Part shown: positions 1 to 64,000 of the stretch, in pieces
Position numbering within the stretch: the stretch's first letter is position 1
How the letters are laid out: each line of letters opens with the position of its first letter
Sequence record: OR545507.1
DNA length: 64,000 nucleotides
Direction: 5' to 3' (one strand)
Made by a program: the position numbers and the translations under genes
Notes under the pieces: generated by a model
Told to the model about the DNA's origin: nothing
The model's database searches: none
Seen by the model: only the letters and a program-made list of their open reading frames with translations

Positions 1-112
1 CTGTATACAGCCTCTGTATCTGTATCCATAATCAAATCACCTTTGTTTAAATTACAAAAGTACTGATAACTGTGCTTAAAAGAATGTACTGATATTAAAA
101 AATCAAATTCCA

Positions 113-490
113 TCACACTTCCCCTAGATTGAAATGATTACAAAAATCATCTTCACCAGTACTGCACCAGATATCTATACATTCCCTGTGAATACATTTA
201 ATTCTACGCTGTAATTCAATCATCTCTTCTAATGTACAGATGTACTTCTTATCAAATACTAATGCCGCCTGAAACAGTGCAGCATCATCAAGTACTGTAT
301 AGTCCAACATCTCGGTTGCTTTACCCCTAAACCCAGTACTAAAATCCATCAAATAAAAGTCAGCATTCCAGTACTTTAAAATCTTGTCCCTAGCGTAGTT
401 TAAATCACCCTTGTATAAGTTAGAGTGCGTAACTAACTCACCAGTGTACATCCATGTCCTTGCACAAAATTCATTATATTTTATTTCCAT
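113..490 (-). CDS. hypothetical protein, FQxSLV-motif family
   Basis: ORF; likely start MEIKYNEF at 490 (track start is a TTG); motif DDAALFQAALVFD. Confidence 0.7.
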   Translation of the reverse strand: MEIKYNEFCARTWMYTGELVTHSNLYKGDLNYARDKILKYWNADFYLMDFSTGFRGKATEMLDYTVLDDAALFQAALVFDKKYICTLEEMIELQRRIKCIHRECIDIWCSTGEDDFCNHFNLGEV

Positions 491-688
491 CTTAATCTCT
501 ACTATAATTAATAAGGTAAACTCCAATATAAGGAGAACGTTCGGCGGCGGGGTATTTTTTGTTTCAAGAAACATGAACTGTACTCTGAAAAACACAATAT
601 AAAACTTTATATTAAACATATACCTTAGCATGTTTTTCAGCGGAAATTTTTTTGACCCCCCCCTGCGGCCTGTCAAAATGAAACGTCT

Positions 689-913
689 CTATTTATTCAG
701 CCTAGAAACCTTGATTTCTTCAATCCTTTTCATTGCACAAAGCCTTCGACTCGTCCTCTCGTATATATTCAATACTCGCTGTAATGCATTATCTGTATTA
801 TCTGCAACTGCAATCTGAACCAAATATGTATCCTTCAAAATAGAATCCATCATGAATTCAAAACCTTTCACACTAAAGCAATATGCCACTTCCGGCTCTT
901 CAAACGTAATCAT
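689..913 (-). CDS. hypothetical protein
   Basis: ORF in co-directional packed run. Confidence 0.65.
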   Translation of the reverse strand: MITFEEPEVAYCFSVKGFEFMMDSILKDTYLVQIAVADNTDNALQRVLNIYERTSRRLCAMKRIEEIKVSRLNK

Positions 914-1109
914 AATTCCAATCCCCTATTCCCTCTAACCTTCTAAGATATCTTGCGTAAATTATTTCGAAATATCTGTGCAACGAAATTACGGATTGCT
1001 CATAATCATCATTCCTGTACATTGTGCATGTCAGAAAATCATTTAACCCAAAATCTAAACTGCACTTGAACTTCTCCTTTGCAATATCACTATTACTTGC
1101 ACTTTTCAT
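900..1109 (-). CDS. hypothetical protein
   Basis: ORF overlapping neighbour; likely start MKSASN. Confidence 0.6.
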   Translation of the reverse strand: MKSASNSDIAKEKFKCSLDFGLNDFLTCTMYRNDDYEQSVISLHRYFEIIYARYLRRLEGIGDWNYDYV

Positions 1110-1269
1110 AATAAACCCTTTGTACCGCATTGGTGTACTGTGAACTCAGCACCACTAATAGGTAATCTATATTGTAAGCACGATTTCCTCGTTGACTAGC
1201 ACGGCTGGAATAAAGAATATTATCCACATATGTATTGAACTGATCTTCAAATAACTCTTTCATCAGCAT
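1093..1269 (-). CDS. small hypothetical protein (58 aa, not in ORF track)
   Basis: hand translation MLMKELFEDQFNTYVDN...YYEKCK fills the gap. Confidence 0.5.
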   Translation of the reverse strand: MLMKELFEDQFNTYVDNILYSSRASQRGNRAYNIDYLLVVLSSQYTNAVQRVYYEKCK

Positions 1270-1291
1270 TATACCATCACATAATCATACA

Positions 1292-1843
1292 TCATACATT
1301 AACAACTTTATCGATGTAATCTTCTAACATATCAATATATCTGGTATTGGTTCTAACTAAAAGGTATGCAAATCCAGAAAACTCCTGTGTATAATGCTTT
1401 ACAGCGTACATACAACGAAGCTTATCATTGTCATACATTGTACTGTACTGAAACAAACTCTCGTCTGATAGCTCTAATAACGCTTGGGCTTCACTTCTCG
1501 TGAACTTCATAGGGTCATGTACTGCATCACAAAAACAAACCTGTGTCTCGCTATTGAAACCCTGTGATAGATATATACCTTCACACTCTGAACGCACCGA
1601 TACTGCATTATAACTATGTGTTGCCCCCATCATATCTGAACTCAAAACTAAAATCAACCCATTTTTATTTTTAATCAACAAATCTGACTTAAGGGATTTG
1701 ATCTCCGTATGGGAAATATCACCAAATCTTCCTGGGACTTCAAACTTATCAACGTTGTATACAATCTTTTGTACTTGCTCTTTTAAACGCTTAATTGCAC
1801 TTCTGTCTTTTTCTAATGTATCTAATAAACTCATTGAACTCAT
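1292..1843 (-). CDS. hypothetical protein, FQxSLV-motif family
   Basis: motif DESLFQYSTMYD; likely start MSSMSLL. Confidence 0.75.
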   Translation of the reverse strand: MSSMSLLDTLEKDRSAIKRLKEQVQKIVYNVDKFEVPGRFGDISHTEIKSLKSDLLIKNKNGLILVLSSDMMGATHSYNAVSVRSECEGIYLSQGFNSETQVCFCDAVHDPMKFTRSEAQALLELSDESLFQYSTMYDNDKLRCMYAVKHYTQEFSGFAYLLVRTNTRYIDMLEDYIDKVVNV

Positions 1844-1853
1844 TGTACTTTCC

Positions 1854-2198
1854 TTACATATTTGTACCGAACAAAACGGAACTTTGAATGCCATTAATCG
1901 ACACTTCATGTACATATATATTTTGTCTGAACAAAGGAACTAATTGAACTAAACTCGTTTGCATAATAATATGCATATGTACATTGTCATATGCCGTTTC
2001 GTATTGGAATCGTGCAGCTTCATCTTCTATGAAATTCGGAACTTGGACTGGATTCTCAAAATTTGTCCTTGTACTGAACTGTACATCATTGTCCTGTACC
2101 TTAATACCATATGAATTATCATTGTTATCAACTACATCAAATTCAATTAAACTACCATCTTTACTGACGTTTACTATATAAACCGAAAATCGACTCAT
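1854..2198 (-). CDS. hypothetical protein, FQxSLV-motif family
   Basis: motif DEAARFQYETAYD. Confidence 0.7.
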   Translation of the reverse strand: MSRFSVYIVNVSKDGSLIEFDVVDNNDNSYGIKVQDNDVQFSTRTNFENPVQVPNFIEDEAARFQYETAYDNVHMHIIMQTSLVQLVPLFRQNIYVHEVSINGIQSSVLFGTNM

Positions 2199-2710
2199 AA
2201 ACCTATTTCCTCTAAATCTTTGACAAATGTATCATAATCCGATAATGACAAAAATATGTCTGTACTGATGTTTTGACGTAATGTATTAAACAAATTATGT
2301 ACCTGTAATAAATCAGGTGCATAAATCAGGGATTGCTGGAAATACGATTCTTCTGTATCTAATATATCCCTGCACTCAATTTCACGAACTCGTTGGTATA
2401 TTGAATTTAATAATACATTTTCATCTTTGAGCATTGGAAGGTATCGGATGTACATGTGCTCCATCAACTCATCCTGGATTGAACCCCTGAACTGCAACAC
2501 GTATTCAAAACACATCACTACATCTTGTAGGTAATTGGCACTGTAATTATTGCTGTAAACAATCTTATGACTTCTGAACTCATCATCATTTCTGAACCAA
2601 TTGTCACCTACTTTGGTGTACTTATGACTAAGCTTCCCATCCTCCAACGCTCGAATGAACTTCATAATGTTAATTGCAAAATCATATGAATGATGCTTGT
2701 GTTGATGCAT
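2195..2710 (-). CDS. hypothetical protein, FQxSLV-motif family
   Basis: motif EESYFQQSLIY; ATGA overlap. Confidence 0.75.
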   Translation of the reverse strand: MHQHKHHSYDFAINIMKFIRALEDGKLSHKYTKVGDNWFRNDDEFRSHKIVYSNNYSANYLQDVVMCFEYVLQFRGSIQDELMEHMYIRYLPMLKDENVLLNSIYQRVREIECRDILDTEESYFQQSLIYAPDLLQVHNLFNTLRQNISTDIFLSLSDYDTFVKDLEEIGL

Positions 2711-2718
2711 TTTTTACC

Positions 2719-2913
2719 TCAATTCTGTCCGAAAAAATAACCAAAATGTTTAAAGCAAGAAAGCATTACTATGTTCATCACTCTATCATCAAATTCATCT
2801 TGTGTTTCTGCACATAATGTTTCACAGATATTCAAATGTAATAATTCAAGCTGGAAACTGTCGGTGAACCAATCAAACTTACGGTATTTTTGTTTAACAT
2901 CAACTGTAAGCAT
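2719..2913 (-). CDS. hypothetical protein
   Basis: ORF in packed run. Confidence 0.6.
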   Translation of the reverse strand: MLTVDVKQKYRKFDWFTDSFQLELLHLNICETLCAETQDEFDDRVMNIVMLSCFKHFGYFFGQN

Positions 2914-2914
2914 A

Positions 2915-3538
2915 CTATATATCCAACCCTTTTACAACATCTACGAAATGTTCAAACACTTCTTTTGAAAAATAACCACCTTCACAAAAAAGCATACTAA
3001 ACGGTGGCAGCATGTCCGATAACTCTTTAGCTAAATTGATTTCTGCTCTTAACTCTTGAACATCAATGATATCATGTACTAAAGATAATTGAAACATGAA
3101 TGCATCTACATCTTCATTCATTTCTGAATTGTAATATAACTCTTCAGGGAATTTGTCGGTTTCGTAATAATAAAAAACTTTATTGTTGAACACACCACTA
3201 ATAGGAACATCATTTTCATCTTTCTTTGAAATGTTTGTTTCCCATGACTCTATATTATTAGGAACAAAAAAATCATAGGCTGATTTTGAACCCTGTACTG
3301 AATCCAACTTTATTCCATAATATTCCGTATCCATGTATTTCTGCTGTAATGTAATACCACGTGTACTGACATTCACTTGGAATATATCATCTTTATCTGG
3401 AACACTAAATGGAATACATAACACTGAATTCTCAGGGTATTTGGCAATGAATGCATCCAGCACTTTATTAAGCACCGGAATGGCAATTTTACTGTACTGC
3501 ATCAAATCATACATTTTAATTCTGGTCATATCATTCAC
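2915..3538 (-). CDS. hypothetical protein, FQxSLV-motif family
   Basis: motif DAFMFQLSLVHD. Confidence 0.75.
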   Translation of the reverse strand: MNDMTRIKMYDLMQYSKIAIPVLNKVLDAFIAKYPENSVLCIPFSVPDKDDIFQVNVSTRGITLQQKYMDTEYYGIKLDSVQGSKSAYDFFVPNNIESWETNISKKDENDVPISGVFNNKVFYYYETDKFPEELYYNSEMNEDVDAFMFQLSLVHDIIDVQELRAEINLAKELSDMLPPFSMLFCEGGYFSKEVFEHFVDVVKGLDI

Positions 3539-4070
3539 CTGTGTATGTTTTCACCCTTAGCGATTCAAAATCCCATACATCACTGATTGTACCATTGTGC
3601 CTGTAATCATAATATTCTACTAATACATTATACAATAACTTCAACGATACAAATTCATGATTCCACGGAGCTTTATTGTCATGAACACATTTGGTGATAT
3701 AAGGTATAATATATAAACTAAACAACACTAATGGTGAATGTATACATTGCATTTGAAAATATTCTTCTTCTTGCATACAATGTTCAGGAATAATTAGATC
3801 ATAATGTGTCTCAAATAAATGTAAACCTATTGTGGTTTTTTTCGTATCACATGCGTACCATATTGTACTATCCGAAATAAATGGAATGATACCATTATTG
3901 TTTGCAATGTACATCATATGGTAAGAGCGATTTGTCTTGTTAAATATCTCGATACTTTCGATATTACTACAAATCATGTATTCAAGGCAATCAATGATCT
4001 TATCTTTAAATGTACCAATTTCATTGAATGACATTGCTTTCTGTACTTTTGATACTGTTGTACTGCTCAT
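3531..4070 (-). CDS. hypothetical protein, FQxSLV-motif family
   Basis: motif EEEYFQMQCIH. Confidence 0.75.
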   Translation of the reverse strand: MSSTTVSKVQKAMSFNEIGTFKDKIIDCLEYMICSNIESIEIFNKTNRSYHMMYIANNNGIIPFISDSTIWYACDTKKTTIGLHLFETHYDLIIPEHCMQEEEYFQMQCIHSPLVLFSLYIIPYITKCVHDNKAPWNHEFVSLKLLYNVLVEYYDYRHNGTISDVWDFESLRVKTYTGE

Positions 4071-4579
4071 ATGTTCTCCTTAAAAAAATCCAAATACTCT
4101 TCATTGAAAGCATATGTATCATCTTTTATGTTATGCACCACATAATCATAAAGAGCTATGAATGCAGGGATTATGATCTTACATGATTTATTATTGTATT
4201 TGTACTGCTCCAAATCAACGGTGTTCAATTTAGCAATAAGCATAGCAGCAAAGATATCTTCATGGCGGTGTACTGTGCTGTACTGAAAATACTCATCCTC
4301 TCCAATATCGGGATGATATAACGGTATAACCAAATTATTACGAATTGACATTTTATATTTTTGTAATGCAGCTAAATGCATGAACCACAATCTATCTTCA
4401 TGGAAAGATGGAAAAATAATTTTGTCTGTGCTAATAAAAATTTCTTCATTTCGATTATTTGTCACAAGAGGTGCATACATTTTAATTTTTGCAGATTTAA
4501 TAATTAAATTAAAAATATAATGAATCTTATGAACTGCACTTGATGCATCTTCGTATGTACTTGGGATTATGAAACTCAC
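4067..4579 (-). CDS. hypothetical protein, FQxSLV-motif family
   Basis: AAGGAG RBS then GTG at 4579; motif EDEYFQYSTVH. Confidence 0.75.
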   Translation of the reverse strand: MSFIIPSTYEDASSAVHKIHYIFNLIIKSAKIKMYAPLVTNNRNEEIFISTDKIIFPSFHEDRLWFMHLAALQKYKMSIRNNLVIPLYHPDIGEDEYFQYSTVHRHEDIFAAMLIAKLNTVDLEQYKYNNKSCKIIIPAFIALYDYVVHNIKDDTYAFNEEYLDFFKENI

Positions 4580-4606
4580 TATATGTTCTCCTTTAAAATG
4601 AATACA

Positions 4607-4636
4607 CATGATAACAGCTTTGGTCTTCTATGTCAA
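4607..4636 (-). promoter_or_regulatory. sigma70-type promoter
   Basis: TTGACA-N17-TATCAT on minus strand upstream of the 4067 gene. Confidence 0.55.
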
Positions 4637-4661
4637 TACCAAAACGAAAAAAGCCCATATC

Positions 4662-5168
4662 TTACGATACAGGCGTTATGGGCATGTTGATTTGAATTTC
4701 ATTGTACAAATCATCAATATATAGACATGAAAAAAACACACTATCTTGTACTATATTGTTGTGATAAAGCATTTTAAATACTACATAAAAAAATAAATCA
4801 ATATCATCGTGGACTAAATTCTGCTGGAACCACCACTCGTCTGTTAAATCTTGTGCATTAAAATCATCAGGAACTTCAATGAACGACATATCACAATCTT
4901 CTTTGTACTCAAACCACATGTCGTCATTCGGATAACGTTCATGCTTCTCTGGGTAACAATTGCTGGGATTAAATGTTAAAATATTAAACCCCGTAGAGCA
5001 ACGTTCTTTATTTAAAAATGTATTATTCCATACCTGATATTTTTCACCAACATCAAGCTCTTCTGTTACTGATTTTATTGCACATAATGTACTGTATATT
5101 GTTTCTATCTTGTGAACATATTTAAATGCAGCATCTAAGCTGAACTCTAAATCATACATGTACTGCAT
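4662..5168 (-). CDS. hypothetical protein, FQxSLV-motif family
   Basis: motif DEWWFQQNLVHD. Confidence 0.75.
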   Translation of the reverse strand: MQYMYDLEFSLDAAFKYVHKIETIYSTLCAIKSVTEELDVGEKYQVWNNTFLNKERCSTGFNILTFNPSNCYPEKHERYPNDDMWFEYKEDCDMSFIEVPDDFNAQDLTDEWWFQQNLVHDDIDLFFYVVFKMLYHNNIVQDSVFFSCLYIDDLYNEIQINMPITPVS

Positions 5169-5488
5169 AAAATTACCTCAACTAAAGCAAGAACTGTATT
5201 AAATTCAACTATACTTGTAATTCCTTGAAGGTACATGTACTTTGCTACTACATATTTCTGTACTAAATTATAATTATTAAATTCCTCAAAATTGTAATTT
5301 AGAACAAAATCTGTACTCAAAAATATCTTATGCATCTCTAATGCACTTTGATAATACGCGTACAACTCACGGATATCAATACTGGTTAAATTATATTGTT
5401 CATATCTATGATACGGGATGGCTTCAATTTCAATACTATAAAACCATTCTCTTAACTTATTAATATCAAATGTATTATTCAGCTTCAT
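5147..5488 (-). CDS. hypothetical protein
   Basis: ORF overlapping neighbours. Confidence 0.65.
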   Translation of the reverse strand: MKLNNTFDINKLREWFYSIEIEAIPYHRYEQYNLTSIDIRELYAYYQSALEMHKIFLSTDFVLNYNFEEFNNYNLVQKYVVAKYMYLQGITSIVEFNTVLALVEVILCSTCMI

Positions 5489-6041
5489 AACTCAATACCT
5501 CCATTAAACACTCATACACACCATCAATCGCATAAGCACAAAAATTGAAATTAATTTTGTGATTCTTGTGTAATGGACTATTGTGTACTGTACTCATTAT
5601 GACATTATAAAATAACAAACGCACTGGTACAAGCATTGAACCTTGGAAAAATTCTTCCTCTGATTTATATGTATTGTACTCTATTGTTTTGTTCGTTTCT
5701 TTATCATATGTTACCATTACTAATGGGGAATTTTTATTATACCATGCGTACTCTAAATCATTCTTTCCAATAACAGCACCAGGTGCGAAATCCAAAAGAC
5801 CAATAACACTACGGGCATTTGGTATATCTGGTGTATTGAATCGTTTATCAAAATGACTCGTGCACGCAATATATGTATTGTACTTCGATGGAATAATACC
5901 AATACATTTGTGGAAATGACGCTTGTGATATTTCTGGGCATTATATAAGGATGCAACAATACAAGCTAACTTTTGTCCCATAAGGATTGCATTAGCGTAG
6001 GTGTACTGAATTTCATTGCTGGTACGGTACTTCGAGGTCAT
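5475..6041 (-). CDS. hypothetical protein, FQxSLV-motif family
   Basis: motif EEEFFQGSMLV. Confidence 0.75.
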   Translation of the reverse strand: MTSKYRTSNEIQYTYANAILMGQKLACIVASLYNAQKYHKRHFHKCIGIIPSKYNTYIACTSHFDKRFNTPDIPNARSVIGLLDFAPGAVIGKNDLEYAWYNKNSPLVMVTYDKETNKTIEYNTYKSEEEFFQGSMLVPVRLLFYNVIMSTVHNSPLHKNHKINFNFCAYAIDGVYECLMEVLSYEAE

Positions 6042-6324
6042 AATATTTCCTTTGCCATATCATGGGCTTAAAATCAATAACAGCTTTCTGTATCTTTTTT
6101 AATAATAAGACATCATAACCACCCGTGTCAATCACTAATTGCTGTTGGAACAATTCTTCATCGGATAATGTATTGAAATCTACAAAATAATCTGTAACTA
6201 TCGAATCATTTAAATGTGCCATGTACCAACCTGAACTTCTTGAATAAATCAAATTCCACCCATCGTCATCATCTTCTAATTCAACATAAATCATATCTGG
6301 GGTATACATCATTTTATACTTCAT
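6013..6324 (-). CDS. hypothetical protein, FQxSLV-motif family
   Basis: motif DEELFQQQLVID. Confidence 0.75.
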   Translation of the reverse strand: MKYKMMYTPDMIYVELEDDDDGWNLIYSRSSGWYMAHLNDSIVTDYFVDFNTLSDEELFQQQLVIDTGGYDVLLLKKIQKAVIDFKPMIWQRKYYDLEVPYQQ

Positions 6325-6862
6325 AACTATATCCTTGCATTAATAAATCATAAACTACATGGACTAAATTTAATTGAATATAAAATTTTAAACCTTTAAT
6401 TAATGAATTCAAATGCATTGTACTGAATAACATTAGATACATCATCTCATGCGGTTTTGTGATTAATGATTTTTGAAATACGCCAGCTTCATCATAAGGG
6501 TCTATGAACTGAAATTTGTCTTCATCATAATTTGTATTGGAATGCTGATATATAAAATAATCATCATTGGTATTGTACCACAAATATCCTTCGAATCCTG
6601 TACTAACATCTTTGGTCAATGGGGATGCTGATACTGGATTTGAACTGATTAATGCACCTACATCAACAATCCCCGTTGTATCATATTCGATTTCAACATC
6701 AATATCAATGTATTTCCTTGCGATATCTGCGTTTATGGACAAATATAAACTACCACCTGTCCTCTGACTCAGGATTCCATCTATATGCGATATAGGATGG
6801 TTGTTATTGAGGATAAGCATTATTGTACTTATCTTGTGTGCTAATAACTCTATCTCATTCAT
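6314..6862 (-). CDS. hypothetical protein, FQxSLV-motif family
   Basis: motif EAGVFQKSLIT. Confidence 0.75.
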   Translation of the reverse strand: MNEIELLAHKISTIMLILNNNHPISHIDGILSQRTGGSLYLSINADIARKYIDIDVEIEYDTTGIVDVGALISSNPVSASPLTKDVSTGFEGYLWYNTNDDYFIYQHSNTNYDEDKFQFIDPYDEAGVFQKSLITKPHEMMYLMLFSTMHLNSLIKGLKFYIQLNLVHVVYDLLMQGYSYEV

Positions 6863-7062
6863 AATTTACCTATCGATGGATACCTAGGATTTGTAGGATG
6901 TAAAATCCTGTCCTGTACTGAAAGGTGCTCAAATGTAATTAAACTCAAATAATAATCGTAATTATCAATACCACCCTTCAAATGTATATTGTAATACATC
7001 TTAATACTATCTAATAATGAATCCTGTAATGCATTTAATGTTATCGTATTAATCTTTTGCAT
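6859..7062 (-). CDS. hypothetical protein
   Basis: ORF, ATGA overlap. Confidence 0.6.
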   Translation of the reverse strand: MQKINTITLNALQDSLLDSIKMYYNIHLKGGIDNYDYYLSLITFEHLSVQDRILHPTNPRYPSIGKL

Positions 7063-7210
7063 TAATGTTCTTCTCTTAAAAATCGTTTGATAGCATAATC
7101 TAAATAAAATTCATAACACATGCTATCTCTGTTCTTTATCCATATTTTGTAATCGGATTTTATATTACGCAACAAATAATTTGTATTAATTGTGTAATAA
7201 TCTAATCGCC

Positions 7211-7603
7211 CTAATCTTTCCATTTAATAGGATACTCCTTTCCTTGTACTATATATGACAAAATCCATCCGTAATGAATAGGATGATTTTTGTCTGAATC
7301 AGGAATAAAATATAAAGCTGTACTTGGATTATGACTGAATAAATCTTTATTGTCAAATGTAAAATGTGATAATATAATTTTCCTTGCACTTGGACGAATA
7401 ACATTCTTAACACTGAACTCTGAACCTTTGTATTTCTCCGATAATTCAAATAATGCATCTGTAATTAAATCACTGATCTCTTGGATTACAAAATTCTGAT
7501 AAAATGCATTAATCTCTTTTAACTCTGTATACAATTCACTTCTGGTATTCAAAAGAAATATTACTTTTTTAAGATCCTGAACTATTTCTGGATTCATATT
7601 CAT
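7211..7603 (-). CDS. hypothetical protein
   Basis: ORF in packed run. Confidence 0.7.
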   Translation of the reverse strand: MNMNPEIVQDLKKVIFLLNTRSELYTELKEINAFYQNFVIQEISDLITDALFELSEKYKGSEFSVKNVIRPSARKIILSHFTFDNKDLFSHNPSTALYFIPDSDKNHPIHYGWILSYIVQGKEYPIKWKD

Positions 7604-7835
7604 TTATCTCATTCTGTAACTTAAGCATCAAAATTTGCATATTAATTTTTTGTAAAAGGTGCTTGATAAATTTCTGTGCCATTTCTTCTTGTTCTTTTGT
7701 ACCAAGATAAAATAACAGATTAAATTCTGATAATCGCAAAGAAAAATCTTCATCACCACCCTTTAAACAAAAATCCCTGTACTTTGTAGCGTACAAATAT
7801 TGGTTTACCTTTTTATAATACCCTGTGTTTTGCAT
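7569..7835 (-). CDS. GTxxQE-family small protein (outlier copy)
   Basis: LFYLGTKEQEE. Confidence 0.7.
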   Translation of the reverse strand: MQNTGYYKKVNQYLYATKYRDFCLKGGDEDFSLRLSEFNLLFYLGTKEQEEMAQKFIKHLLQKINMQILMLKLQNEINEYESRNSSGS

Positions 7836-8023
7836 ACTATCTCCGTTCGCAACGAATTTATATAATAATGAACAAATTGTTCTTGTGAACGTGTTCCAAG
7901 AAAAATAAACATATCAAACTCTGTTGTTTTTAAATTCAATGCATCTTTTGTAAAATTCCTGTTGAATTCCCTGTACTTTTGGGTCTTCCATTCTTGATTA
8001 ATTGTCTTGTATATCGATTTCAA
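7805..8023 (-). CDS. GTxxQE-family small protein (outlier copy)
   Basis: FIFLGTRSQEQ. Confidence 0.7.
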   Translation of the reverse strand: MKSIYKTINQEWKTQKYREFNRNFTKDALNLKTTEFDMFIFLGTRSQEQFVHYYINSLRTEIVCKTQGIIKR

Positions 8024-8324
8024 TGATTCTCCCTGATGTACCTTGTATTAGCTTATCATACATATCGAGCATCACTTTTTGAATACTAATTAGTACTGGC
8101 ATCGTGCAAATATCAATGTCGTATACTAAGCTGTACTGGAATAATTCATCTTCCTGCATTTGTACTAAATTAGGTAAAGGATAATTGTCTGCCTCTTCAT
8201 CCTGGTACTTGAAATGCATAACACCATCCTTTTTGTACAAAAGAATGTCAATATCACCTAACTCATCAGCATAACCAAAAATACATATACTCGATGTTTT
8301 TGCTATATTAAATTTCATCTCCAC
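7998..8324 (-). CDS. hypothetical protein, FQxSLV-motif family
   Basis: motif EDELFQYSLVYD. Confidence 0.75.
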   Translation of the reverse strand: MEMKFNIAKTSSICIFGYADELGDIDILLYKKDGVMHFKYQDEEADNYPLPNLVQMQEDELFQYSLVYDIDICTMPVLISIQKVMLDMYDKLIQGTSGRIIEIDIQDN

Positions 8325-8560
8325 CTCTCTCCGTCAGCACAAGAGTACTGGTACGTTGTCGTTAGGGTAGGGACCATGTTTGTAATGGGCATATTATTAA
8401 CAATAACGGTAACAGGCATAAGAATCGTCTCTACTCTACTCTGTCCTGTCCTTGTACAATTCATCTTCTGCATTTCATCTGAATCCATGAAATACAATAC
8501 AAATGGTGCAATCCCAAGAACAATACACAAGACGATAAGGAAATTTAAAAAATTTAACAT
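8315..8560 (-). CDS. small membrane-anchored protein
   Basis: hydrophobic N-terminus FLIVLCIVLGIAPFVLYF. Confidence 0.65.
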   Translation of the reverse strand: MLNFLNFLIVLCIVLGIAPFVLYFMDSDEMQKMNCTRTGQSRVETILMPVTVIVNNMPITNMVPTLTTTYQYSCADGERWR

Positions 8561-8586
8561 AATTTTTACCCTATGATTAACGTTAG

Positions 8587-8617
8587 TGTACTATATCAGT
8601 AATGAAAAGTACTGTCA
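8587..8617 (-). promoter_or_regulatory. sigma70-type promoter
   Basis: TTGACA-N17-TATAGT with AGTACT next to the -35; coordinates approximate. Confidence 0.65.
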
Positions 8618-8619
8618 AG

Positions 8620-9024
8620 CTAGTATTGCACTGTTCTAATGAAAGTACCTTTACTCATGGATTTAAGCTTATGAACCTCTTCCTGCATACCCTTAATTAA
8701 CCCTAAAGGTATAGGTAAATCATGTACTAAGCTGTACTGAAAGTATTCTTCTTCAGATAAAGTACTAACATCTGGAACGCCAATTTTAGTTATATAATCT
8801 TGATGTGTTGACCAATAAATTATATCTTCAGTACTATTGTACTCCCCATATACTGAACAATATTGATGAATATCTTTCCTGTACCCTTGAGCAATAAAGA
8901 ACTTATCTAATGCATTACCAGCATTAATAGAATTTACTTCGATTGTCACAGTACTTGAGCTTGTATAACTCTTAATATTATCAGTACTCTTAATACTCAA
9001 CGATGTGTTCTTCATAATCACCAT
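8620..9024 (-). CDS. hypothetical protein, FQxSLV-motif family
   Basis: motif EEEYFQYSLVHD. Confidence 0.75.
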   Translation of the reverse strand: MVIMKNTSLSIKSTDNIKSYTSSSTVTIEVNSINAGNALDKFFIAQGYRKDIHQYCSVYGEYNSTEDIIYWSTHQDYITKIGVPDVSTLSEEEYFQYSLVHDLPIPLGLIKGMQEEVHKLKSMSKGTFIRTVQY

Positions 9025-9334
9025 TAGGCTCCTGTTTAGATTCTTTCATTAGTACTATCATCTTATGTACTAATGGCATAGGGAACTCTAAATCCCATAC
9101 TAATGATTCCTGGAAGTATTCCTCTGGTGATAAAGTACTTAAATCTTTAATATCAACGTGCTTGTATATTTTATTTTCGTAATTAACAAATGATATATAT
9201 AAATCACTAACATAAGAATCATAGGTAATTGTGAATGGCTTACCCTTGTAATCCATTACATCTCTACATAGACTACTTTTGATATATGTATGTTCAAATG
9301 ATTTATATACCTTGAGTTGTATATTAGTTTTCAT
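8990..9334 (-). CDS. hypothetical protein, FQxSLV-motif family
   Basis: motif PEEYFQESLVWD; C-terminal part similar to 8620 gene. Confidence 0.75.
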   Translation of the reverse strand: MKTNIQLKVYKSFEHTYIKSSLCRDVMDYKGKPFTITYDSYVSDLYISFVNYENKIYKHVDIKDLSTLSPEEYFQESLVWDLEFPMPLVHKMIVLMKESKQEPNGDYEEHIVEY

Positions 9335-9599
9335 ATTTCTCTTTATTAGCTTGTTTGGTTTTATAGTGAATTAAATCTATTAATGTAATCAAGTACAACG
9401 TCAAATAGTACTCTTGTTGATCTGTACCTAATGATACAAAGAACTTGTGCTCATAGATTAAAACCTGTTTCTCTTCAAATGGACATTTAATCCTCTGTAT
9501 AGGCTTAAGTAAATGATAGTACTTATTAAATCTATGATACATTTCTAGTTCTGTCAGTACTTTCATATTAAACACATACTCCATTAGCTGTAGCATCAC
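9324..9599 (-). CDS. GTxxQE-family small protein
   Basis: SLGTDQQE. Confidence 0.75.
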   Translation of the reverse strand: MMLQLMEYVFNMKVLTELEMYHRFNKYYHLLKPIQRIKCPFEEKQVLIYEHKFFVSLGTDQQEYYLTLYLITLIDLIHYKTKQANKEKYEN

Positions 9600-9789
9600 G
9601 TAAAGCTGTCAAATACTTCTGTACGGCTTGCTCTTGCTTATTTGTACCTAAAAGTATATACATCCATAATTCACTGTAATGTACATCTTGTGTATAAGGG
9701 TCATTGTAACTTTTTGATAATATAGCATCAAATTCAGATGCATGAACCCTTGTGAACTTAAGAATATCTTGTTGTGTTATGATTCTCAT
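9568..9789 (-). CDS. GTxxQE-family small protein
   Basis: LLGTNKQE. Confidence 0.8.
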   Translation of the reverse strand: MRIITQQDILKFTRVHASEFDAILSKSYNDPYTQDVHYSELWMYILLGTNKQEQAVQKYLTALRDATANGVCV

Positions 9790-10001
9790 ATCTTTTCCTG
9801 TACAATCTGTATAAGAATACCTATGTGTGAATTAACAGTTCTCTCTTGATGCTGTGTTCCTAAGAGTGTCAGTACTATCATATCTGAACGCAAAAGATTT
9901 TTTTCAAGTTCACTTATATCAGTTCTTGAATCAAGTGCCATATATTTGTGATTATTCTTCCTGAATAGTGCCAAGTACTCTTGGTTTGATATTATCTTCA
10001 T
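9786..10001 (-). CDS. GTxxQE-family small protein
   Basis: LLGTQHQE. Confidence 0.8.
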   Translation of the reverse strand: MKIISNQEYLALFRKNNHKYMALDSRTDISELEKNLLRSDMIVLTLLGTQHQERTVNSHIGILIQIVQEKI

Positions 10002-10213
10002 AGTTTACTTTTAATTTCCATTAAAAGTGCTCTAATATGCTCATTGACAAATCGCTCTTGGGAATCTGTGTCTAGGGTGAGAAGCATTCTTAAATCGGAA
10101 CCTCTGATGGTATATTCTAAATCATTCTTTGATTCTCGCATAAGTTTCTGAAAGGATGAGAAGTGTAATCCCATGAGTTCAATGTATTCTGCTGTTCCTA
10201 GTGGTTTTGGCAT
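9998..10213 (-). CDS. GTxxQE-family small protein
   Basis: TLDTDSQE. Confidence 0.8.
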   Translation of the reverse strand: MPKPLGTAEYIELMGLHFSSFQKLMRESKNDLEYTIRGSDLRMLLTLDTDSQERFVNEHIRALLMEIKSKL

Positions 10214-10431
10214 TTTAGTTCAATAGCTCGTTTAAGTGTATTAATATAATCTTTAATGTCGTGTTCTTGATAGTTCGTTCCAAGGGTAGCTAGAACATAG
10301 ACTTCATTTCTCTTAATAATTTTATCCATATCTGGTATATCTGATGTGTTAATGACGAAGAGCTTCAAAAACAGTCCATTTATGATTGTTAGGTATTCTA
10401 CATCGGTAATGATTTTCATTTGCATTTGCAT
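10198..10431 (-). CDS. GTxxQE-family small protein
   Basis: TLGTNYQE. Confidence 0.8.
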   Translation of the reverse strand: MQMQMKIITDVEYLTIINGLFLKLFVINTSDIPDMDKIIKRNEVYVLATLGTNYQEHDIKDYINTLKRAIELKCQNH

Positions 10432-10637
10432 TTTCTCAGTACTGATTCTTTAAGTTCATTGATGTAGCACTCTACATATTCTTCTTGTAGGTTTGTTCCG
10501 ATATGTAACAGTACTCTTAAATCTGCTCTCAGTACTTCTTTGTCATCTTCATCTATATCAGACAGTGTTATGTTTAAGAATTTACTTGAACTCTCTATAA
10601 GTAATATTACTGAATCACCTTTGCTTAAAATTTTCAT
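10416..10637 (-). CDS. GTxxQE-family small protein
   Basis: HIGTNLQE. Confidence 0.8.
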   Translation of the reverse strand: MKILSKGDSVILLIESSSKFLNITLSDIDEDDKEVLRADLRVLLHIGTNLQEEYVECYINELKESVLRKCKCK

Positions 10638-10845
10638 AATCTCTTTTTGCTTTCCTCGCCAAAAGGTACATATACGATTCTTCGTATTGTGCTTGGTAGT
10701 TTGTGTTTAAGAGTCGAAACAACTTCTGTTCTGCTAGAACTAGTTGCTTATCTTCATAACAACGGTAGCGTATCAACTTTTTGTATTCGATGTTGATTAC
10801 ATCCATTACTATAAGCCCATGTTCATCATCTGTCAAGTGTTTCAT
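10615..10845 (-). CDS. GTxxQE-family small protein
   Basis: LLNTNYQA. Confidence 0.8.
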   Translation of the reverse strand: MKHLTDDEHGLIVMDVINIEYKKLIRYRCYEDKQLVLAEQKLFRLLNTNYQAQYEESYMYLLARKAKRDYENFKQR

Positions 10846-11084
10846 GCATTTTTTCTTTTTCTTATATGTTTAGTTAAAAGGTATATTAGTTTTCTGATGT
10901 ATTCTTCTTGATAGTTTGTTCCTAAGAGTGCAAGAAGTTTTGCTTCAACTAAAGCTAGTTGTCGTTCTTCGAATGTGTGTTCCAGTATGTACTTGGGGTT
11001 TGATTTTTTAGCGTAAGCACTATTAGTCTTCATTACAATCTTATGATATTCATTAGCTGTTAGGATTTTTAAATACTTGATCAT
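10842..11084 (-). CDS. GTxxQE-family small protein
   Basis: LLGTNYQE. Confidence 0.8.
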   Translation of the reverse strand: MIKYLKILTANEYHKIVMKTNSAYAKKSNPKYILEHTFEERQLALVEAKLLALLGTNYQEEYIRKLIYLLTKHIRKRKNA

Positions 11085-11304
11085 GTATCTTTTCCTTTAT
11101 AGAGAATTTAAGATATCGAAGCATACTTTCAATGTAATACTCTTGTCTGTCAGTGCCAAGAAAGTACATGAGTTGAATGTATAAAACTTCTGCACTCCTT
11201 TCCGCTGGAGACTTGTTTGTGTCGTTTGGAAGTTGATTTGTATGTTTTCTTGATTTAATTAGTCGTTCTTTTAACTCATCGTCTGTTAAGTATTTCATTT
11301 TCAT
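11053..11304 (-). CDS. GTxxQE-family small protein
   Basis: FLGTDRQE. Confidence 0.8.
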   Translation of the reverse strand: MKMKYLTDDELKERLIKSRKHTNQLPNDTNKSPAERSAEVLYIQLMYFLGTDRQEYYIESMLRYLKFSIKEKIHDQVFKNPNS

Positions 11305-12253: not shown

Positions 12254-12255
12254 TA

Positions 12256-51333: not shown

Positions 51334-51341
51334 GAGTGAAT

Positions 51342-52484: not shown

Positions 52485-52494
52485 AGGAGGGAAT

Positions 52495-53674
52495 ATGTTA
52501 CCTTTTTCTAGAATGGTTAAGTACGGGAATATAGCACCTGTATATGAATCTAGTGTGATTAAAATGCAAGCACCATCAGCTTTTACCAACAACACATTGA
52601 TGATTCTGTATAAGAACGGTGATTTGTGGGGTATTGGCGGTAACAATGCTGGTATATTCGGTCTTGGAAATACAACGACACAGACCAAATGGGGTCGCTT
52701 AATGCAAAATGTGAAAAATTTTTGGTGCACAAGGAATGCTTCATATAGCTTAGTTCAGACCAATGATAATAAATTTTATTATGCAGGTTGGAACCTTTGG
52801 ACTGGTACATCTAGTGCAGTTCAAAGTACTACATTTGTTGATTGTACGTCTTATTTTTCAGGTTTTAATGTGGATAATATCAAGGAGATATATCCAAATG
52901 TTCGTAATATGTTTTTACTAACAAATGATAGTGTTCTTTACGCAATAGGTGATAATTCGACCTATGAGTTGGGTAGTAGTTCATCTACACTTACATCATT
53001 TACACAGGTTAATATTAATGTTAAAAAGGTTAGTTCATTTTTCAATAGTCCGACTTGGATAATTAAAAATGATAATTCAGTATGGCGATGTGGTAAAACT
53101 AGTACTGGTACATTGTTAACTGGTTCTGCTACTGATACGTTGACGATTTGGACAAAGTATAGTTTTCCTACAGGACAGTACCCCGTTGATATAATTTCAT
53201 ATAACAATATGTTGGGTATAGTTCTTAATGTAGATAATACTTATCCGCTATATGGTGTAGGGTCACAAAATTCACGGACAATTAGGAAATGGTGTTCTAT
53301 CTAATACTAATAAGATATCTTTAACGCCACAAAGTACTTATTTACAATTAACTAATGTTTCCGATTTTGAATTTATACAAACATATTCACAAAATCCTAG
53401 GGGATTATTATATAGAAATGGAAGTCGTATTTTTGGAACAGGGTATAATAATTATGGACAGCTTGGTAACAATTCATCTAATAATGCTTCAATTTTCGTC
53501 CAAGCACAATTTCCAAATTCTGTAGTTTATGATCCGTCAACATCGTTGGTTGCTGCGAATGACAATGCATTATTTGCATATGTGAATGGGAAATTATACT
53601 ACACTGGTATGTCTCCAGTAGGGACAGTTGTTGGTACATGGACTTTAACTGAATACCAATTGCCACAAATTTAA
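52495..53674 (+). pseudogene. MLPF-leader beta-propeller protein 11, frameshifted near 53275
   Basis: ORF stops at 53304, but the shifted frame continues GQLGNG...GYNNYGQLGNN...EYQLPQI to a stop at 53674. Confidence 0.75.
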
Positions 53675-53684
53675 GGAGAAAATT

Positions 53685-54854
53685 ATGTTACCTTTTGGAA
53701 GAATGTTAAAGTACGGAAATATTAAACCAACTCTTCCTGAAATAAAGAAATTGGATGGTAGTCAATTACATGTCGGATTACTTTATAGTACAGGGAATAT
53801 GTACATGCGTGGTTCTGGTTCGAACTATAAATTAGGTACAGGGGATGCTAGTGATGTATTAGGTGGTTGGGTACATGTACCCTATGAAGTTGATGATTTT
53901 TGGGCGTGTGTATCCGGTACATTAATAAAGACTGTTGATAATAAATTATATTGTGCAGGTCTATACATGGGTGGATATTTTGGGGCTAGTGGTTCATATG
54001 TTAACTGGACTGAAGTAACTTCATTATTTGTAGGTATTGACGTGTCGCAAATAAAGAATATAGAATTTACGTCAGCGGGTACTTCCGGTAGTACACTAAT
54101 ATTGATGTTAGATGGTCGTTTATATGGGTTCGGTATGAACAGTAGATCTGAGTTAGGTGTTAATAACAAAGTTGTATCTCCCATTCTTATAGATACTGGG
54201 GTAAGTGCAATAGGAGCACATAAGTTAGGCGGTTCATCGTTCCATTATATAAAAGGCGGTAAGTACTACAGATGTGGAACATCGGTTGGTAGTAATATTG
54301 GAAGTTCTTCTTTAACTACTTTTACGGTATTGAGTATTCCTGATAACGTTATATCTATGCAAATATTATATGACAACGTACAGTTATTATGTTTAGGAAG
54401 TTCTGGATATAGTATCTATATGGCTGGTTCTAATGATTATGGTGGAAGAGGTGTTGGCGGTTCTACGGTTTATACTACATTCAGGAAAATAGATCTTACA
54501 GGATTTGGTGTTGTTCCCAGTGAAATACTATTTGAAAATGCTGGAAATGGTTATGTTAATATATCAACTGATAGTACTGGAGTATATACATGTGGTGGTG
54601 GAGCGGGTGTTAACGGTTTAGGTAGACCAACTAATGTAATACCAAGTTCACAGTTGGGAGTAGTTCAGTTCAGTACTGGAGTAGAACAATCAAATATAAG
54701 TCGTGTGTATTCACAGAGTTCGAGTTCTGTTATATATTGTATAGTCAATAATGAATTGTACTGGGCTGGTAGTAATTCATATTTTACTGATCAAACCACA
54801 AATACTGGTACACAATTTTCATTTATTAAGATGAAGGATATGCCTTCTGCTTAG
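53685..54854 (+). CDS. MLPF-leader beta-propeller protein 12
   Basis: MLPFGRMLKYGNIKP; similar to copy 9. Confidence 0.8.
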   Translation: MLPFGRMLKYGNIKPTLPEIKKLDGSQLHVGLLYSTGNMYMRGSGSNYKLGTGDASDVLGGWVHVPYEVDDFWACVSGTLIKTVDNKLYCAGLYMGGYFGASGSYVNWTEVTSLFVGIDVSQIKNIEFTSAGTSGSTLILMLDGRLYGFGMNSRSELGVNNKVVSPILIDTGVSAIGAHKLGGSSFHYIKGGKYYRCGTSVGSNIGSSSLTTFTVLSIPDNVISMQILYDNVQLLCLGSSGYSIYMAGSNDYGGRGVGGSTVYTTFRKIDLTGFGVVPSEILFENAGNGYVNISTDSTGVYTCGGGAGVNGLGRPTNVIPSSQLGVVQFSTGVEQSNISRVYSQSSSSVIYCIVNNELYWAGSNSYFTDQTTNTGTQFSFIKMKDMPSA

Positions 54855-54925
54855 ATTTTATGCCAGTGCCTTGTACTGGCATTTTTTGTCCTAAATATAA
54901 TAACGATTTACATTTGGAGGATACA

Positions 54926-55331
54926 ATGCTACCCTTTCGAAGAATTATCACATCATCAAAAAAGAACATACAACCTTCTGTTACAAAAATAGCTTCATCT
55001 GATAAGACAGTTTTTGCCCTTATGTCAGATGGTACGTTGTACAGTAGAGGTTCTCAATAGTTTGGGTTATTAATATTTTTCTAATCATATTATAACTTTA
55101 TTAGGTGTTTACTCAACTGGTTATAACACAAGACAATTAGGTATAGGTACACAAACCGATGCGTCGGCCTATACCAAATGTGTACTACCAATAGAGATGA
55201 ATAACGTATATGTTACAGCAACTTTATACAGAACTTACTTAACCGATGGTATACAAATTTACAGTACTGGACAAAATATTACAGACGGTGGAGTTGCCAG
55301 TACTGTATTTGTCAAAGATTCACCATTTTAG
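54926..55331 (+). pseudogene. MLPF-family remnant (N- and C-termini only)
   Basis: MLPFRRI...YSRGSQ* then TGYNTRQLGIG...YRTYLTDGIQIYSTG...KDSPF, like the C-termini of copies 4 and 7. Confidence 0.7.
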
Positions 55332-62394: not shown

Positions 62395-62395
62395 T

Positions 62396-62665
62396 TTATT
62401 CAATGATCCCCAACTTCACAATCTCATACCCGTCCAGATAGCCGTAGGAACACTCAGGTGTTTCATAAGATGAACCATCATGGATGCCCTGGCATTGACT
62501 TTTGGAATTCTCAAGCAATCGTTGCAGTACTGATACGTCATCAAGAACGTAATACAAGTTAGCATATAGGTCAGTTACAATACAGTACTCCAACATATCA
62601 AATGTATCAATCGAAATTTCAACCTTAGCAAATCGTTTCTTTTCTTTATTATACAGTGCGTACAT
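62396..62665 (-). CDS. hypothetical protein
   Basis: ORF with GGAG RBS. Confidence 0.7.
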   Translation of the reverse strand: MYALYNKEKKRFAKVEISIDTFDMLEYCIVTDLYANLYYVLDDVSVLQRLLENSKSQCQGIHDGSSYETPECSYGYLDGYEIVKLGIIE

Positions 62666-62666
62666 A

Positions 62667-63038
62667 TTAATCTCCATAATCAAGTTTAACTAACTTACCA
62701 CCCAGATACCCAAAGTTTTCTGGCTTCGCATCTGAATAGAAGAAGTCAGTACTTAACTCTGAATTCAATGCTAAAGCACACAACTCCACCCAAAATAAAC
62801 CCCTATGTTGAACTGGCTTACAACGTTTCTGTACAGTTACTAGTCCAGTACATGATGACCACAACGTAGGACAGATACTACTATCACTACGATTGGAGTA
62901 CTGCATCCACGAACGTTCATTGAGGTTAGCTATCATCCCTGTTAAGAATAGCTTCCAACTTTTAAAGGTTGGAATCTTGATAGCATATTCCCCAATGAGG
63001 ATAACAGTTCGTGTTGCACCTTTCAAATCTATATTCAT
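62667..63038 (-). CDS. minimal protein-kinase-like protein
   Basis: GATRTV, YAIKIP, NLNE, SDAKPENFG, KLDYG at the C-terminus. Confidence 0.65.
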   Translation of the reverse strand: MNIDLKGATRTVILIGEYAIKIPTFKSWKLFLTGMIANLNERSWMQYSNRSDSSICPTLWSSCTGLVTVQKRCKPVQHRGLFWVELCALALNSELSTDFFYSDAKPENFGYLGGKLVKLDYGD

Positions 63039-63046
63039 ATTTTTAA

Positions 63047-63298
63047 TTAGAAGAACACAAACCAAGTCCAGAACAAATTCCACATTACAAATAAAGACAT
63101 AGTGGTTTTATGTACAATATCAGCAGTACTGGTCCATCCTCCACCGTGTCCTATTCCATTTATGAATAGAACTAAGAACAAGATACCATTTACTACAATA
63201 GTACATACTAAGTACACAAATACATTCCATGCAAGTCCAGGGGATACTAAAGTAAATGGTAAAACTATTAGTAGTATTAGAACTAATAATATTTTCAT
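63047..63298 (-). CDS. small membrane protein
   Basis: three hydrophobic segments. Confidence 0.65.
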   Translation of the reverse strand: MKILLVLILLIVLPFTLVSPGLAWNVFVYLVCTIVVNGILFLVLFINGIGHGGGWTSTADIVHKTTMSLFVMWNLFWTWFVFF

Positions 63299-63337
63299 TT
63301 ATCGCCTCACTTAATTAACGTGACATATCACGTAATA

Positions 63338-63514
63338 TTAGTACGAATCAGATTCCCAGTACTCGATTGCTTCTTTCAGCAATTCTTTAGCACGTTGTTT
63401 TGCAATGCGAGCGGGGAACTGATATGTGTACATTAACTGACGCTTCACTTCATTCAGTGAAAGCTGTTCATGGTACAGTGCATCCATCAGTCGATTACGA
63501 GTACGTAGTTTCAT
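63338..63514 (-). CDS. small hypothetical protein (58 aa, not in ORF track)
   Basis: hand translation MKLRTRNRLMDALYHEQ...EYWESDSY; AAGGA RBS. Confidence 0.6.
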   Translation of the reverse strand: MKLRTRNRLMDALYHEQLSLNEVKRQLMYTYQFPARIAKQRAKELLKEAIEYWESDSY

Positions 63515-63525
63515 ATAAGTTATCC

Positions 63526-64000
63526 TTATTTCAAAGAATCATAGTAAGCAGTGTCAAAGATTGGAGTCATAATAACATAGTCAATACGGTCAATGTAAGT
63601 TGAACTCCACATTTCTGGTTTGTCATATAACTGACGCTCGCGTTCATTCATACGAGTCAGTACTTCTTCCAATTTACTACGTGAATCCATCAATGTATTA
63701 CTCGAACCATAAGTGAAGTACTCAGTCCAATGATATTCATATTCAGTACTGATAGATTGAATAGTACCATCTTTGAAATGAGCTAAGGCATAACCTTTCT
63801 CTACAAAGTTATCAGGTGGAAGAACACCATCTGGATTAGTTTTCAATGCTTGTGCTAACTTTTCTTTAATTTCATTTAACGTGCATACTGAACGAATGTT
63901 CTTCAGGTTTGATACTTGAAAATCACTGTACTTTCCAAAGAAAAAGACACGCCAATCTTTAGGTTCATTATCAGATACGGTAGCATCAGGGTGATGGGCG
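63526..64000 (-). CDS. hypothetical protein, 5' end outside window
   Basis: frame of 63526-63846 stays open to the window edge. Confidence 0.65.
   Translation of the reverse strand, partial: AHHPDATVSDNEPKDWRVFFFGKYSDFQVSNLKNIRSVCTLNEIKEKLAQALKTNPDGVLPPDNFVEKGYALAHFKDGTIQSISTEYEYHWTEYFTYGSSNTLMDSRSKLEEVLTRMNERERQLYDKPEMWSSTYIDRIDYVIMTPIFDTAYYDSLK

Follow-up and report, generated by a model that had tools for sequence, protein, structure and literature searches.

Virulent phages avoid restriction-site palindromes (PMC6286503), which raises the question of why one such palindrome, AGTACT, recurs throughout a 64,000-nucleotide stretch of phage DNA (the window). This stretch corresponds letter for letter to bases 1-64000 of the genome of Escherichia phage Sharanji (OR545507.1; 350,079 bp; Asteriusvirus), a jumbo myovirus of the RaK2/121Q/PBECO4/G17 type that was sequenced on an Illumina platform. 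We find that AGTACT is best explained as a selected palindrome of the type of the cyanobacterial HIP1, present in the enterobacterial RaK2-like phages and read on duplex DNA by a lineage-specific phage factor that is two-fold symmetric, or palindrome-specific. Genome-wide counts refer to Sharanji minus 79 bases (300,001-300,079).

AGTACT is in excess under codon-aware and Markov null models

The window contains 253 copies of AGTACT, where shuffles that preserve dinucleotides give 21.5 ± 4.5 (maximum 34), and AGTACT heads the hexamer ranking, followed by GTACTG (155), CAGTAC (140) and TTTTTA (104). The whole genome holds 903 copies, the next hexamer being TTCTTT with 633. On average a site is met about every 390 bp in the genome and every 156 bp in the terminal repeat described below. 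A sequence-only reading of the window had put about 28 copies between 15.9 and 20.0 kb, and exactly 28 are found there (about 1.4 expected). Its description of the motif as common window-wide does not quite hold, as positions 376-8091 and 10537-15908 have no copy; its statement that coding sites lie in different frames agrees with the count (61/40/53). Coding sequence carries 154 of the window sites (2.88 per kb) and non-coding sequence 99 (9.39 per kb), where chance would give 0.34 per kb. In this split, 14 AGTACT-rich, tightly packed small open reading frames (ORFs) that start with ATG, encode 59-81 amino acids and have no GenBank annotation (36918-40490, minus strand) were counted as coding, since treating them as intergenic inflates the non-coding count.

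First- to fourth-order Markov models of the genome predict 100.5, 183.7, 346.7 and 737.2 copies, respectively. AGTACT takes first rank under orders 2 and 3. Its excess persists under order 4, where the model already takes AGTAC and GTACT, both products of the motif, as given. When synonymous codons are shuffled within genes, 48.9 ± 5.7 copies are expected in the coding sequences of the window (139 observed) and 117.7 ± 9.7 in 210 long ORFs outside it (422 observed, z = 31), so that the expectation from codon usage is exceeded 3-4-fold. Among the 429 Ser-Thr dipeptides of those long ORFs, 236 are written AGT-ACT, compared with 71 expected by codon usage. AGT makes up 34% of the serine codons of the phage, in part because of the motif. 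One of its own tRNAs, a tRNA-Ser, has the anticodon ACT and so reads AGT (genome 95470-95561, confirmed by ARAGORN); a tRNA-Thr and a tRNA adenosine deaminase are encoded as well.

Outside the early block, AGTACT density is flat along genes at ~2.5 per kb, with a sole dip at ribosome-binding sites. Over the genome as a whole, it climbs towards the ends. In the window, genes lie on the minus strand throughout 1-40,714, on the plus strand between 40.8 and 55.1 kb, and again on the minus strand from 55.3 kb. The plus-strand region is an array of 12 paralogues of ~380 amino acids (gp106-gp118, 40817-55060) with 29 coding AGTACT (2.2 per kb), and the excess is thus independent of strand and of early promoters. 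The paralogues share a mean identity of ~30%, and one is annotated as an RCC1-repeat protein.

An origin of the excess in codon usage, base composition or copies of a promoter repeat finds some footing in the 36-50 or so window sites that lie within a 24-copy promoter cassette family, and in the order-4 expectation, which takes up most of the excess (737 of 903). It is contradicted by the codon shuffle, by the excess in long ORFs distant from the early block, by the unconserved flanks of the sites, by the conservation tests below and by the minority share of the cassettes, and the order-4 value is itself built on AGTAC and GTACT. We regard such an artefact as ruled out, its probability being negligible. 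The outcome that the sequence-only reading had named as refuting, a loss of the enrichment under such nulls or its full explanation by promoter repeats, did not occur.

Single-letter variants differ in abundance according to the position of the change. The most over-represented are those at the outer positions (TGTACT 2.08, GGTACT 1.99, AGTACC 2.08 and AGTACA 1.74 of expectation), with a mean of ~1.2 for inner positions. Since A precedes GTACT in 66% of cases, it is the palindrome itself that is under selection.

AGTACT sites are conserved, evenly spaced and strand-symmetric

We compared Sharanji with TH47, an independent isolate (157 kb aligned, 84.6% column identity). AGTACT is the best-conserved frequent hexamer, with 76.0% of sites retained, against 45.9% for all hexamers and 46.7% for hexamers of the same composition. 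In codon-aligned structural genes of Klebsiella phage KP13-7 and Cronobacter phage GAP32 (~63% amino-acid identity), 28-32% of the sites are position-identical, compared with 15% for all hexamers. For codons whose amino acids have not changed, the retained share of AGTACT sites is 81% and 60%, against 35-37%. About 70% of the sites turn over across genera, and density is maintained. The sites are thus under purifying selection, and it is well supported that AGTACT is positively maintained at the DNA level.

The flanks of the sites are weak, 46% having C at -1 and 44-47% having G at +6. Their profile is reverse-complement symmetric to three positions even though more than 85% of the genes share one strand, which suggests that duplex DNA is recognised, by something two-fold symmetric, rather than an RNA or peptide signal. 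A test for dispersed repeats found no extended shared flanks beyond the 24-copy, 63-nt cassette, which covers a minority of sites; flanks are otherwise near background. Spacing is more even than random: the coefficient of variation of the gaps is 0.87 over 64-335 kb (random, 0.997 ± 0.041), with a value of 0.76 for the early block. The longest gap measures 2,103 bp where 3,165 ± 559 bp is expected, and gaps below 50 bp are rarer than expected.

These data bear on a neutral drive of the kind in Elhai's model of HIP1, in which a methylation-linked, biased mismatch repair restores AGTACT and abundance is a by-product. HIP1 is the precedent (PMC4390886), and the prevalence of outer-position variants matches what has been reported for it. 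The deamination-type neighbours AGTATT and AATACT are nevertheless not depleted (0.98 and 1.21 of expectation; z of +0.2 and -2.1 under the codon null), so no footprint of very-short-patch repair is seen, and C-to-T changes are neither over- nor under-represented among the site differences from TH47. Deamination repair of the very-short-patch type was rejected on these two grounds. The even spacing and the fixed promoter positions described below also disagree with a neutral drive, as does a cytosine methyltransferase that is missing in part of the clade and has a reported CpG context as its target; we consider this explanation improbable.

The sequence-only reading had inferred positive selection for a methyltransferase mark, a protein site or a recombination or repair signal. 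Maintenance at the DNA level upholds the first half of this statement; the three functions are not separable by sequence alone.

The excess is found in enterobacterial relatives that purge other palindromes

An AGTACT excess is present in six sampled groups: KP13-7 (Alcyoneusvirus, 5.5-fold), GAP32 (Mimasvirus, 6.2-fold), CBB (Mimasvirus, 16-fold, and 19.5-fold in its own terminal repeat), Erwinia phage pEa_SNUABM_12 (Eneladusvirus, 6.2-fold), Yersinia phage fHe-Yen9-04 (77 per 20.5 kb) and an uncultivated 358-kb contig (70 per 20.5 kb). The relatives Pseudomonas phage PA5oct (4 observed, 17 expected), Agrobacterium phage Atu_ph07 (3 and 10.3) and Vibrio phage 2.275.O (8 and 13.7) are without it. 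As judged from these genomes, the excess is common to the enterobacterial RaK2-like jumbo phages. In an unrelated large coliphage, Justusliebigvirus C3, AGTACT is among 28 purged palindromes (0 in 50 kb, 16.7 expected), and 70 other viral contigs pooled contain 87 copies where 237 are expected. The site is therefore normally selected against in phages, and we infer that the RaK2-like clade must in some way offset this pressure.

The clade purges other palindromes almost completely. Sharanji has no GCGC in 350 kb (292 expected), and GCGC is at 0 in every RaK2-like sample counted. About 22 G+C-rich 6-bp palindromes are also at 0, GGTACC and CGTACG among them (31.6 expected for each palindrome with four G/C); GTGCAC (2.3-fold) and CACGTG (1.6-fold) are spared. 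The purge pattern is equal in the Klebsiella, Cronobacter, Pectobacterium and Erwinia relatives and does not occur in the Pseudomonas or Vibrio relatives. Vibrio phage 2.275.O carries a 7-deazaguanine (queuosine-type) synthesis cluster at 36966-40999 and shows no palindrome purge; it appears to use a different anti-restriction strategy.

Because the trait tracks enterobacterial hosts, and because the Vibrio phage lacks it while its capsid protein is about as close to that of GAP32 (81%) as the RaK2 protein is (79%), a host protein of the Enterobacterales might be the reader. An example is SlmA, a nucleoid-occlusion factor with AGTACT inside its consensus GTGAGTACTCAC. The SlmA-binding site is GT(R)AG(Y)(R)CT(Y)AC, with G1, T2, A4 and G5 required, and its core is AGTACT (PMC3020112). 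However, there are 0 matches to GTRAGYRCTYAC in 350 kb, and G at -1 is the rarest flank of AGTACT (6%), the flank preferences being opposite to those of the SlmA-binding site, which led us to reject SlmA as the reader. Vibrio also has SlmA, and the Vibrio phage has the 7-deazaguanine genes, which would serve a different anti-restriction strategy. We find reading by a host protein very improbable.

AGTACT occupies fixed positions in early promoters

The highest AGTACT density of the genome, 6.4 per kb (132 sites), is found in a minus-strand early-gene block that probably coincides with the direct terminal repeat, at about 15,778-36,445. This placement follows from the start of the G17 record, at window position ~15,778, from the published repeat lengths (20,668 bp for Sharanji by PhageTerm, PMC11895373; terminal redundancies of ~20 kb for G17, PMC6563267) and from the annotation 'Direct Terminal Repeats' of a relative, which falls under the match to 16-22 kb. 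At the inferred right edge of the repeat, an ORF-poor stretch that may be non-coding (34818-36710) contains 17 sites (9 per kb).

In the early block, tiny genes follow one another in an array, each behind its own sigma-70-type promoter and a hairpin in the 5' untranslated region. The order of elements is TTGACA or TTGCAA, a 16-17-bp spacer, (G)TATAAT, gTTTTACAT, a GGGGAGA...TCTCCCC hairpin, a ribosome-binding site and ATG. At least one AGTACT is present in 23 of the 24 copies of the 63-nt cassette. In promoter coordinates the motif starts at approximately -39/-41 (AGTAC|TTGCAA) or at -19/-20 (AGTACT-G-TATAAT), and in a few promoters it overlaps the hexamers (TTGAC|AGTACT; AG|TACTAT). The minus-strand promoters at 27004-27036 (AGTAC|TTGCAA-N10-AGTACT-G-TATAAT, with sites abutting the upstream edges of both -35 and -10), at 19552-19579 (TTGACA-N9-AGTACT-G-TATAAT, with a single site at approximately -19 to -14) and at 20914-20942 (TTGAC|AGTACT ... 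AG|TACTAT, with sites overlapping both hexamers) exemplify these arrangements. AGTACT is borne by 28 of 38 promoter-like sites in the early block and by 18 of 31 in the terminal repeat of CBB, at the same two positions, and by 12 of 109 in the remaining Sharanji genome. This placement is operator-like, as far as promoter sequences can indicate.

The sequence-only reading had placed AGTACT next to the -35 or -10 of many promoters, and this was confirmed by 18 copies of AGTACTTGCA, 7 of TTGACAGTACT and 20 minus-strand copies of AGTACT-N1-2-(T/C/G)ATAAT. Its further statement, that the motif is concentrated in promoters and terminators, agrees with the fixed early-promoter positions and was mostly wrong for terminators. 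Among the terminator-like hairpins scanned in 15.8-35.8 kb, 0 of 22 have AGTACT in the stem; the one clear case is a terminator hairpin formed from the motif downstream of gp112 (49285-49303, plus strand; GCCAGTACT-C-AGTACTGGC followed by a T run). Terminator stems were therefore rejected as a main location. Promoters do not account for the excess either: about 36-50 of the 253 window sites (about 15-20%) lie in promoter-like windows, while ~80% of the window sites, and nearly all sites elsewhere in the genome, lie outside them.

A reader that needs no methylation would be a phage-encoded, possibly virion-delivered, dimeric DNA-binding protein. It would regulate early promoters, by repression or activation, and coat the genome in the manner of a nucleoid protein or for protection. 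The strand-symmetric palindrome, the even spacing of the sites, their peak density in the terminal repeat and the two fixed promoter positions, which are 20 bp apart on the same helix face and conserved in two genera, would all suit such a protein. No candidate protein was identified, and unmodified DNA with 903 ScaI-type sites would be a liability amid the near-total purge of G+C palindromes unless the protein occludes them on entry. We think it rather unlikely that binding without methylation is the whole explanation.

The same block contains a second repeated element, a hairpin with a 12-bp stem (AAAGGGATTGACTCCGGTCAGTCCCTTT) followed by GCTATTATAT, in four copies (17235-17262, 19987-20014, 23256-23283 and 26544-26571). 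It can be read as a promoter, with a TTGACT -35 within the stem and a TATTAT -10. Each copy leads an ORF-free module of 150-250 nt that also holds a Chi octamer. These modules may be small RNA genes; Rfam returned no match for them, and no family matched in a scan of the whole window.

gp542 is the best candidate for a methyltransferase acting at AGTACT

The genome encodes two recognisable DNA methyltransferases, the m5C enzyme gp251 and gp542, an N6-adenine enzyme of family PF05869 with an NPPY motif. gp542 is the sole ORF in the genome with a motif of the form (N/D/S)PP(Y/F/W). At E<=1e-35 its homologues comprise 69 records, all from host genera of AGTACT-rich phages (Escherichia 33, Klebsiella 10, Erwinia 8, Salmonella 6, Yersinia 4, and 2 each for Serratia, Pectobacterium, Cronobacter and 'Xanthomonas'), and none from the Pseudomonas, Vibrio or Agrobacterium relatives. 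This clade restriction makes gp542 the best candidate for the writer, as far as homology can suggest one. The search for a GTAC-specific methyltransferase that the sequence-only reading had proposed thus yields a candidate enzyme, but specificity for the tetramer is unlikely, given that the genome has no GGTACC or CGTACG and that the enrichment of TGTACA is only 1.6-fold.

The m5C enzyme gp251 is unlikely to be the writer. Close orthologues are absent in most of the AGTACT-rich Erwinia, Yersinia and Serratia relatives, and a 51%-identical homologue occurs in a phage that purges AGTACT. Bisulfite analysis of RaK2 found methylation in the CpG context (PMC3622015), and C-to-T changes at AGTACT are not unusual. 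We also considered gp251 and the overlapping downstream gp250 as a dcm-vsr-like pair and rejected this, as gp250 has no Pfam hit and its four homologue clusters all come from close relatives.

In some Asteriusviruses the m5C gene carries an in-frame insertion of 342 codons exactly at the catalytic Pro-Cys motif (..GGFP|CFTEGT..), which is probably an intein. In TH47 it lies at 175441-177327; the ORF remains continuous, at 633 amino acids, and tblastn detects the insertion also in JNE01, UE-S1, A4 and ph0011.

Two blocks lack AGTACT and one carries TGTACT in a single orientation

Two blocks without AGTACT sit just outside the terminal repeat. The first (376-8091) comprises 18 small genes, gp002-gp019. 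It has no AGTACN at all and contains TGTACT 41 times (5.3 per kb) on the plus strand, that is, AGTACA on the coding strand, against 0-1 in the opposite orientation. TGTACT is the top hexamer of the block, where it occurs in all three frames and with varied flanks. A sequencing artefact was rejected as the cause because the data are Illumina data and TH47, isolated independently, shows the same pattern; decay from AGTACT was rejected because one frame would need Leu-to-Gln/His changes at every site.

The second block (10537-15908, minus strand) is part of a tandem array, with members gp030-gp051, and has 15 GTAC, of which 11 are AGTACA at a position conserved between paralogues. Between the two blocks lies an AGTACT-rich island (8092-10536) with 17 sites (7 per kb). 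The array comprises 27 tandem genes for paralogues of ~75 amino acids (gp024-gp051, 9324-15710; mean identity ~37%); AGTACT occurs in the first six members (9.3-10.6 kb) and in none of the others.

A polar signal of this kind brings to mind a Chi-like control or entry signal for recombination, a nuclease or nicking by the phage, a palindrome being able to work in both orientations. Such a role could explain why AGTACT density climbs towards the genome ends and why TGTACT in one orientation replaces the palindrome in one block, as for a strand-read signal. Genes for RecA, RecD-like, SbcCD and Cas4-like nucleases are present in the phage, and E. coli Chi itself is ~10-fold enriched, with a one-orientation cluster in the same terminal repeat. 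The Chi-type signals known so far lack symmetry, though; the 66% of GTACT preceded by A indicate selection on the palindrome itself, and no enzyme is tied to AGTACT. We assign only a small chance to this explanation. As a palindrome with symmetric flanks, AGTACT itself does not behave as a polar, Chi-type word; TGTACT in 376-8091 is the exception.

The Chi octamer has 29 copies in the genome, about 2 being expected. Within the inferred terminal repeat, CCACCAGC stands in one orientation at 17140, 17363, 18940, 20839, 23188, 24456, 25169, 29371 and 35841, and GCTGGTGG at 35853 forms a back-to-back pair with the last of these near the right boundary. The clustered orientation would suit RecBCD entering from the left terminus.

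A tentative mechanism

We propose that a phage DNA methyltransferase, for which gp542 is the candidate, would write AGTACT. Methylation would protect a restriction-prone site of the ScaI/Eco255I type, and phage DNA would in this way be marked densely and at even intervals. Where AGTACT lies just upstream of the -35 and/or -10 of host-type early promoters it would act as an operator, and early transcription could be gated by the methylation state of the site or by its binding protein. In full, with a methyl mark written by gp542 and with or without a binding protein, this mechanism is put forward tentatively, as a reading of the sequence data that falls somewhat short of an even chance.

Several observations weigh against it. 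The match between gp542 and the trait rests on a single evolutionary origin, and many clade-specific genes share this profile; a survey of PF05869 homologues in IMG/VR revealed no independent lineage with the AGTACT trait. Several distant PF05869 homologues lie in GATC-rich contigs, and gp542 may for this reason be a Dam-type GATC enzyme. With GGTACC and CGTACG purged, any methylation has to be specific for the hexamer and not for GTAC. A protective methyl mark alone leaves the benefit of having more sites unaccounted for. Finally, the AGTACT-free blocks and the one-orientation TGTACT are predicted by no model that we considered.

More broadly, Sharanji and its relatives may hold the first viral counterpart of HIP-type iteration, in which a restriction-type palindrome would serve as a positively selected, evenly spaced 'self' mark with a writer and/or reader of phage origin and would gate the host-type early promoters in the terminal repeat; TGTACT would hint at strand-read nicking, recombination or replication. 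We consider this close to evenly balanced, with a slight lean towards doubt.

Implications

The finding is real and robust, and AGTACT iteration is unreported as far as literature searches reach: it is mentioned neither in the Sharanji, G17, CBB, RaK2 and PA5oct papers nor in the results of full-text searches. Phages are textbook avoiders of palindromes, and this clade is stricter than most; one ScaI-type site has nevertheless been multiplied to ~900 conserved copies. This implies a dedicated, undescribed system of protection and reading in jumbo phages that are widely isolated and are candidates for therapy, and it makes these phages a compact and tractable system for studying the HIP1 problem, now 30 years old. 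In practical terms, phages could be typed by ScaI/RsaI digestion and by methylome, and loss of the writer is predicted to expose the phages to AGTACT-specific restriction.

Comparison with known systems

The sequence-only reading had named HIP1 as the precedent for an iterated palindrome, and the analogy is apt. HIP1 (GCGATCGC) and the alternate highly iterated palindromes of cyanobacteria (PMC5861425; PMC4390886; PMC13756078) share with AGTACT hyper-abundance relative to Markov expectation, occurrence in non-coding DNA and in all frames of coding DNA, conservation across genomes above background, non-random spacing, favoured outer-position variants and site turnover at constant density (PMC5861425). 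In abundance and top rank, in its all-frame and non-coding occurrence without a longer repeat, and in its conservation, AGTACT behaves as a palindrome of the HIP type. HIP1 is also associated with orphan DNA methyltransferases, for which gp542 is a candidate here. There are differences as well. AGTACT is an A+T-rich hexamer in a virus, whereas HIP1 is an octamer in cells; its excess is 8-fold in the genome and 16-20-fold in CBB, compared with 15-300-fold for HIP1; and it has fixed early-promoter positions and coexists with a near-total purge of other palindromes. It is not HIP1 proper, as the motif differs from GCGATCGC and GCGC and CGATCG are absent or nearly so. Restriction-site avoidance is extreme in these genomes, and AGTACT runs the opposite way, although coliphage C3 purges this very site.

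Chi (GCTGGTGG), DNA uptake sequences and KOPS are likewise genome-wide, selected and dense 'self' words read by DNA-processing machines. They are asymmetric and orientation-biased, whereas AGTACT is a symmetric palindrome and only the TGTACT block is polar. Dam methylation of GATC, read by SeqA and MutH, and the Dam-sensitive promoters of IS10 and Mu mom show how a methylated palindrome can be both a genome-wide mark and a promoter switch overlapping -35 or -10, a combination that for AGTACT is only proposed; GATC is not over-represented in E. coli, unlike AGTACT in Sharanji. The early block, in turn, is reminiscent of the 'promoter early stem-loop' cassettes of T4 and of the pre-early terminal-repeat genes of T5, in that tiny early genes are arrayed with repeated strong sigma-70 promoter and hairpin cassettes in a long terminal repeat. 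This parallel covers the cassette but not the hexamer, as most AGTACT lie outside cassettes.

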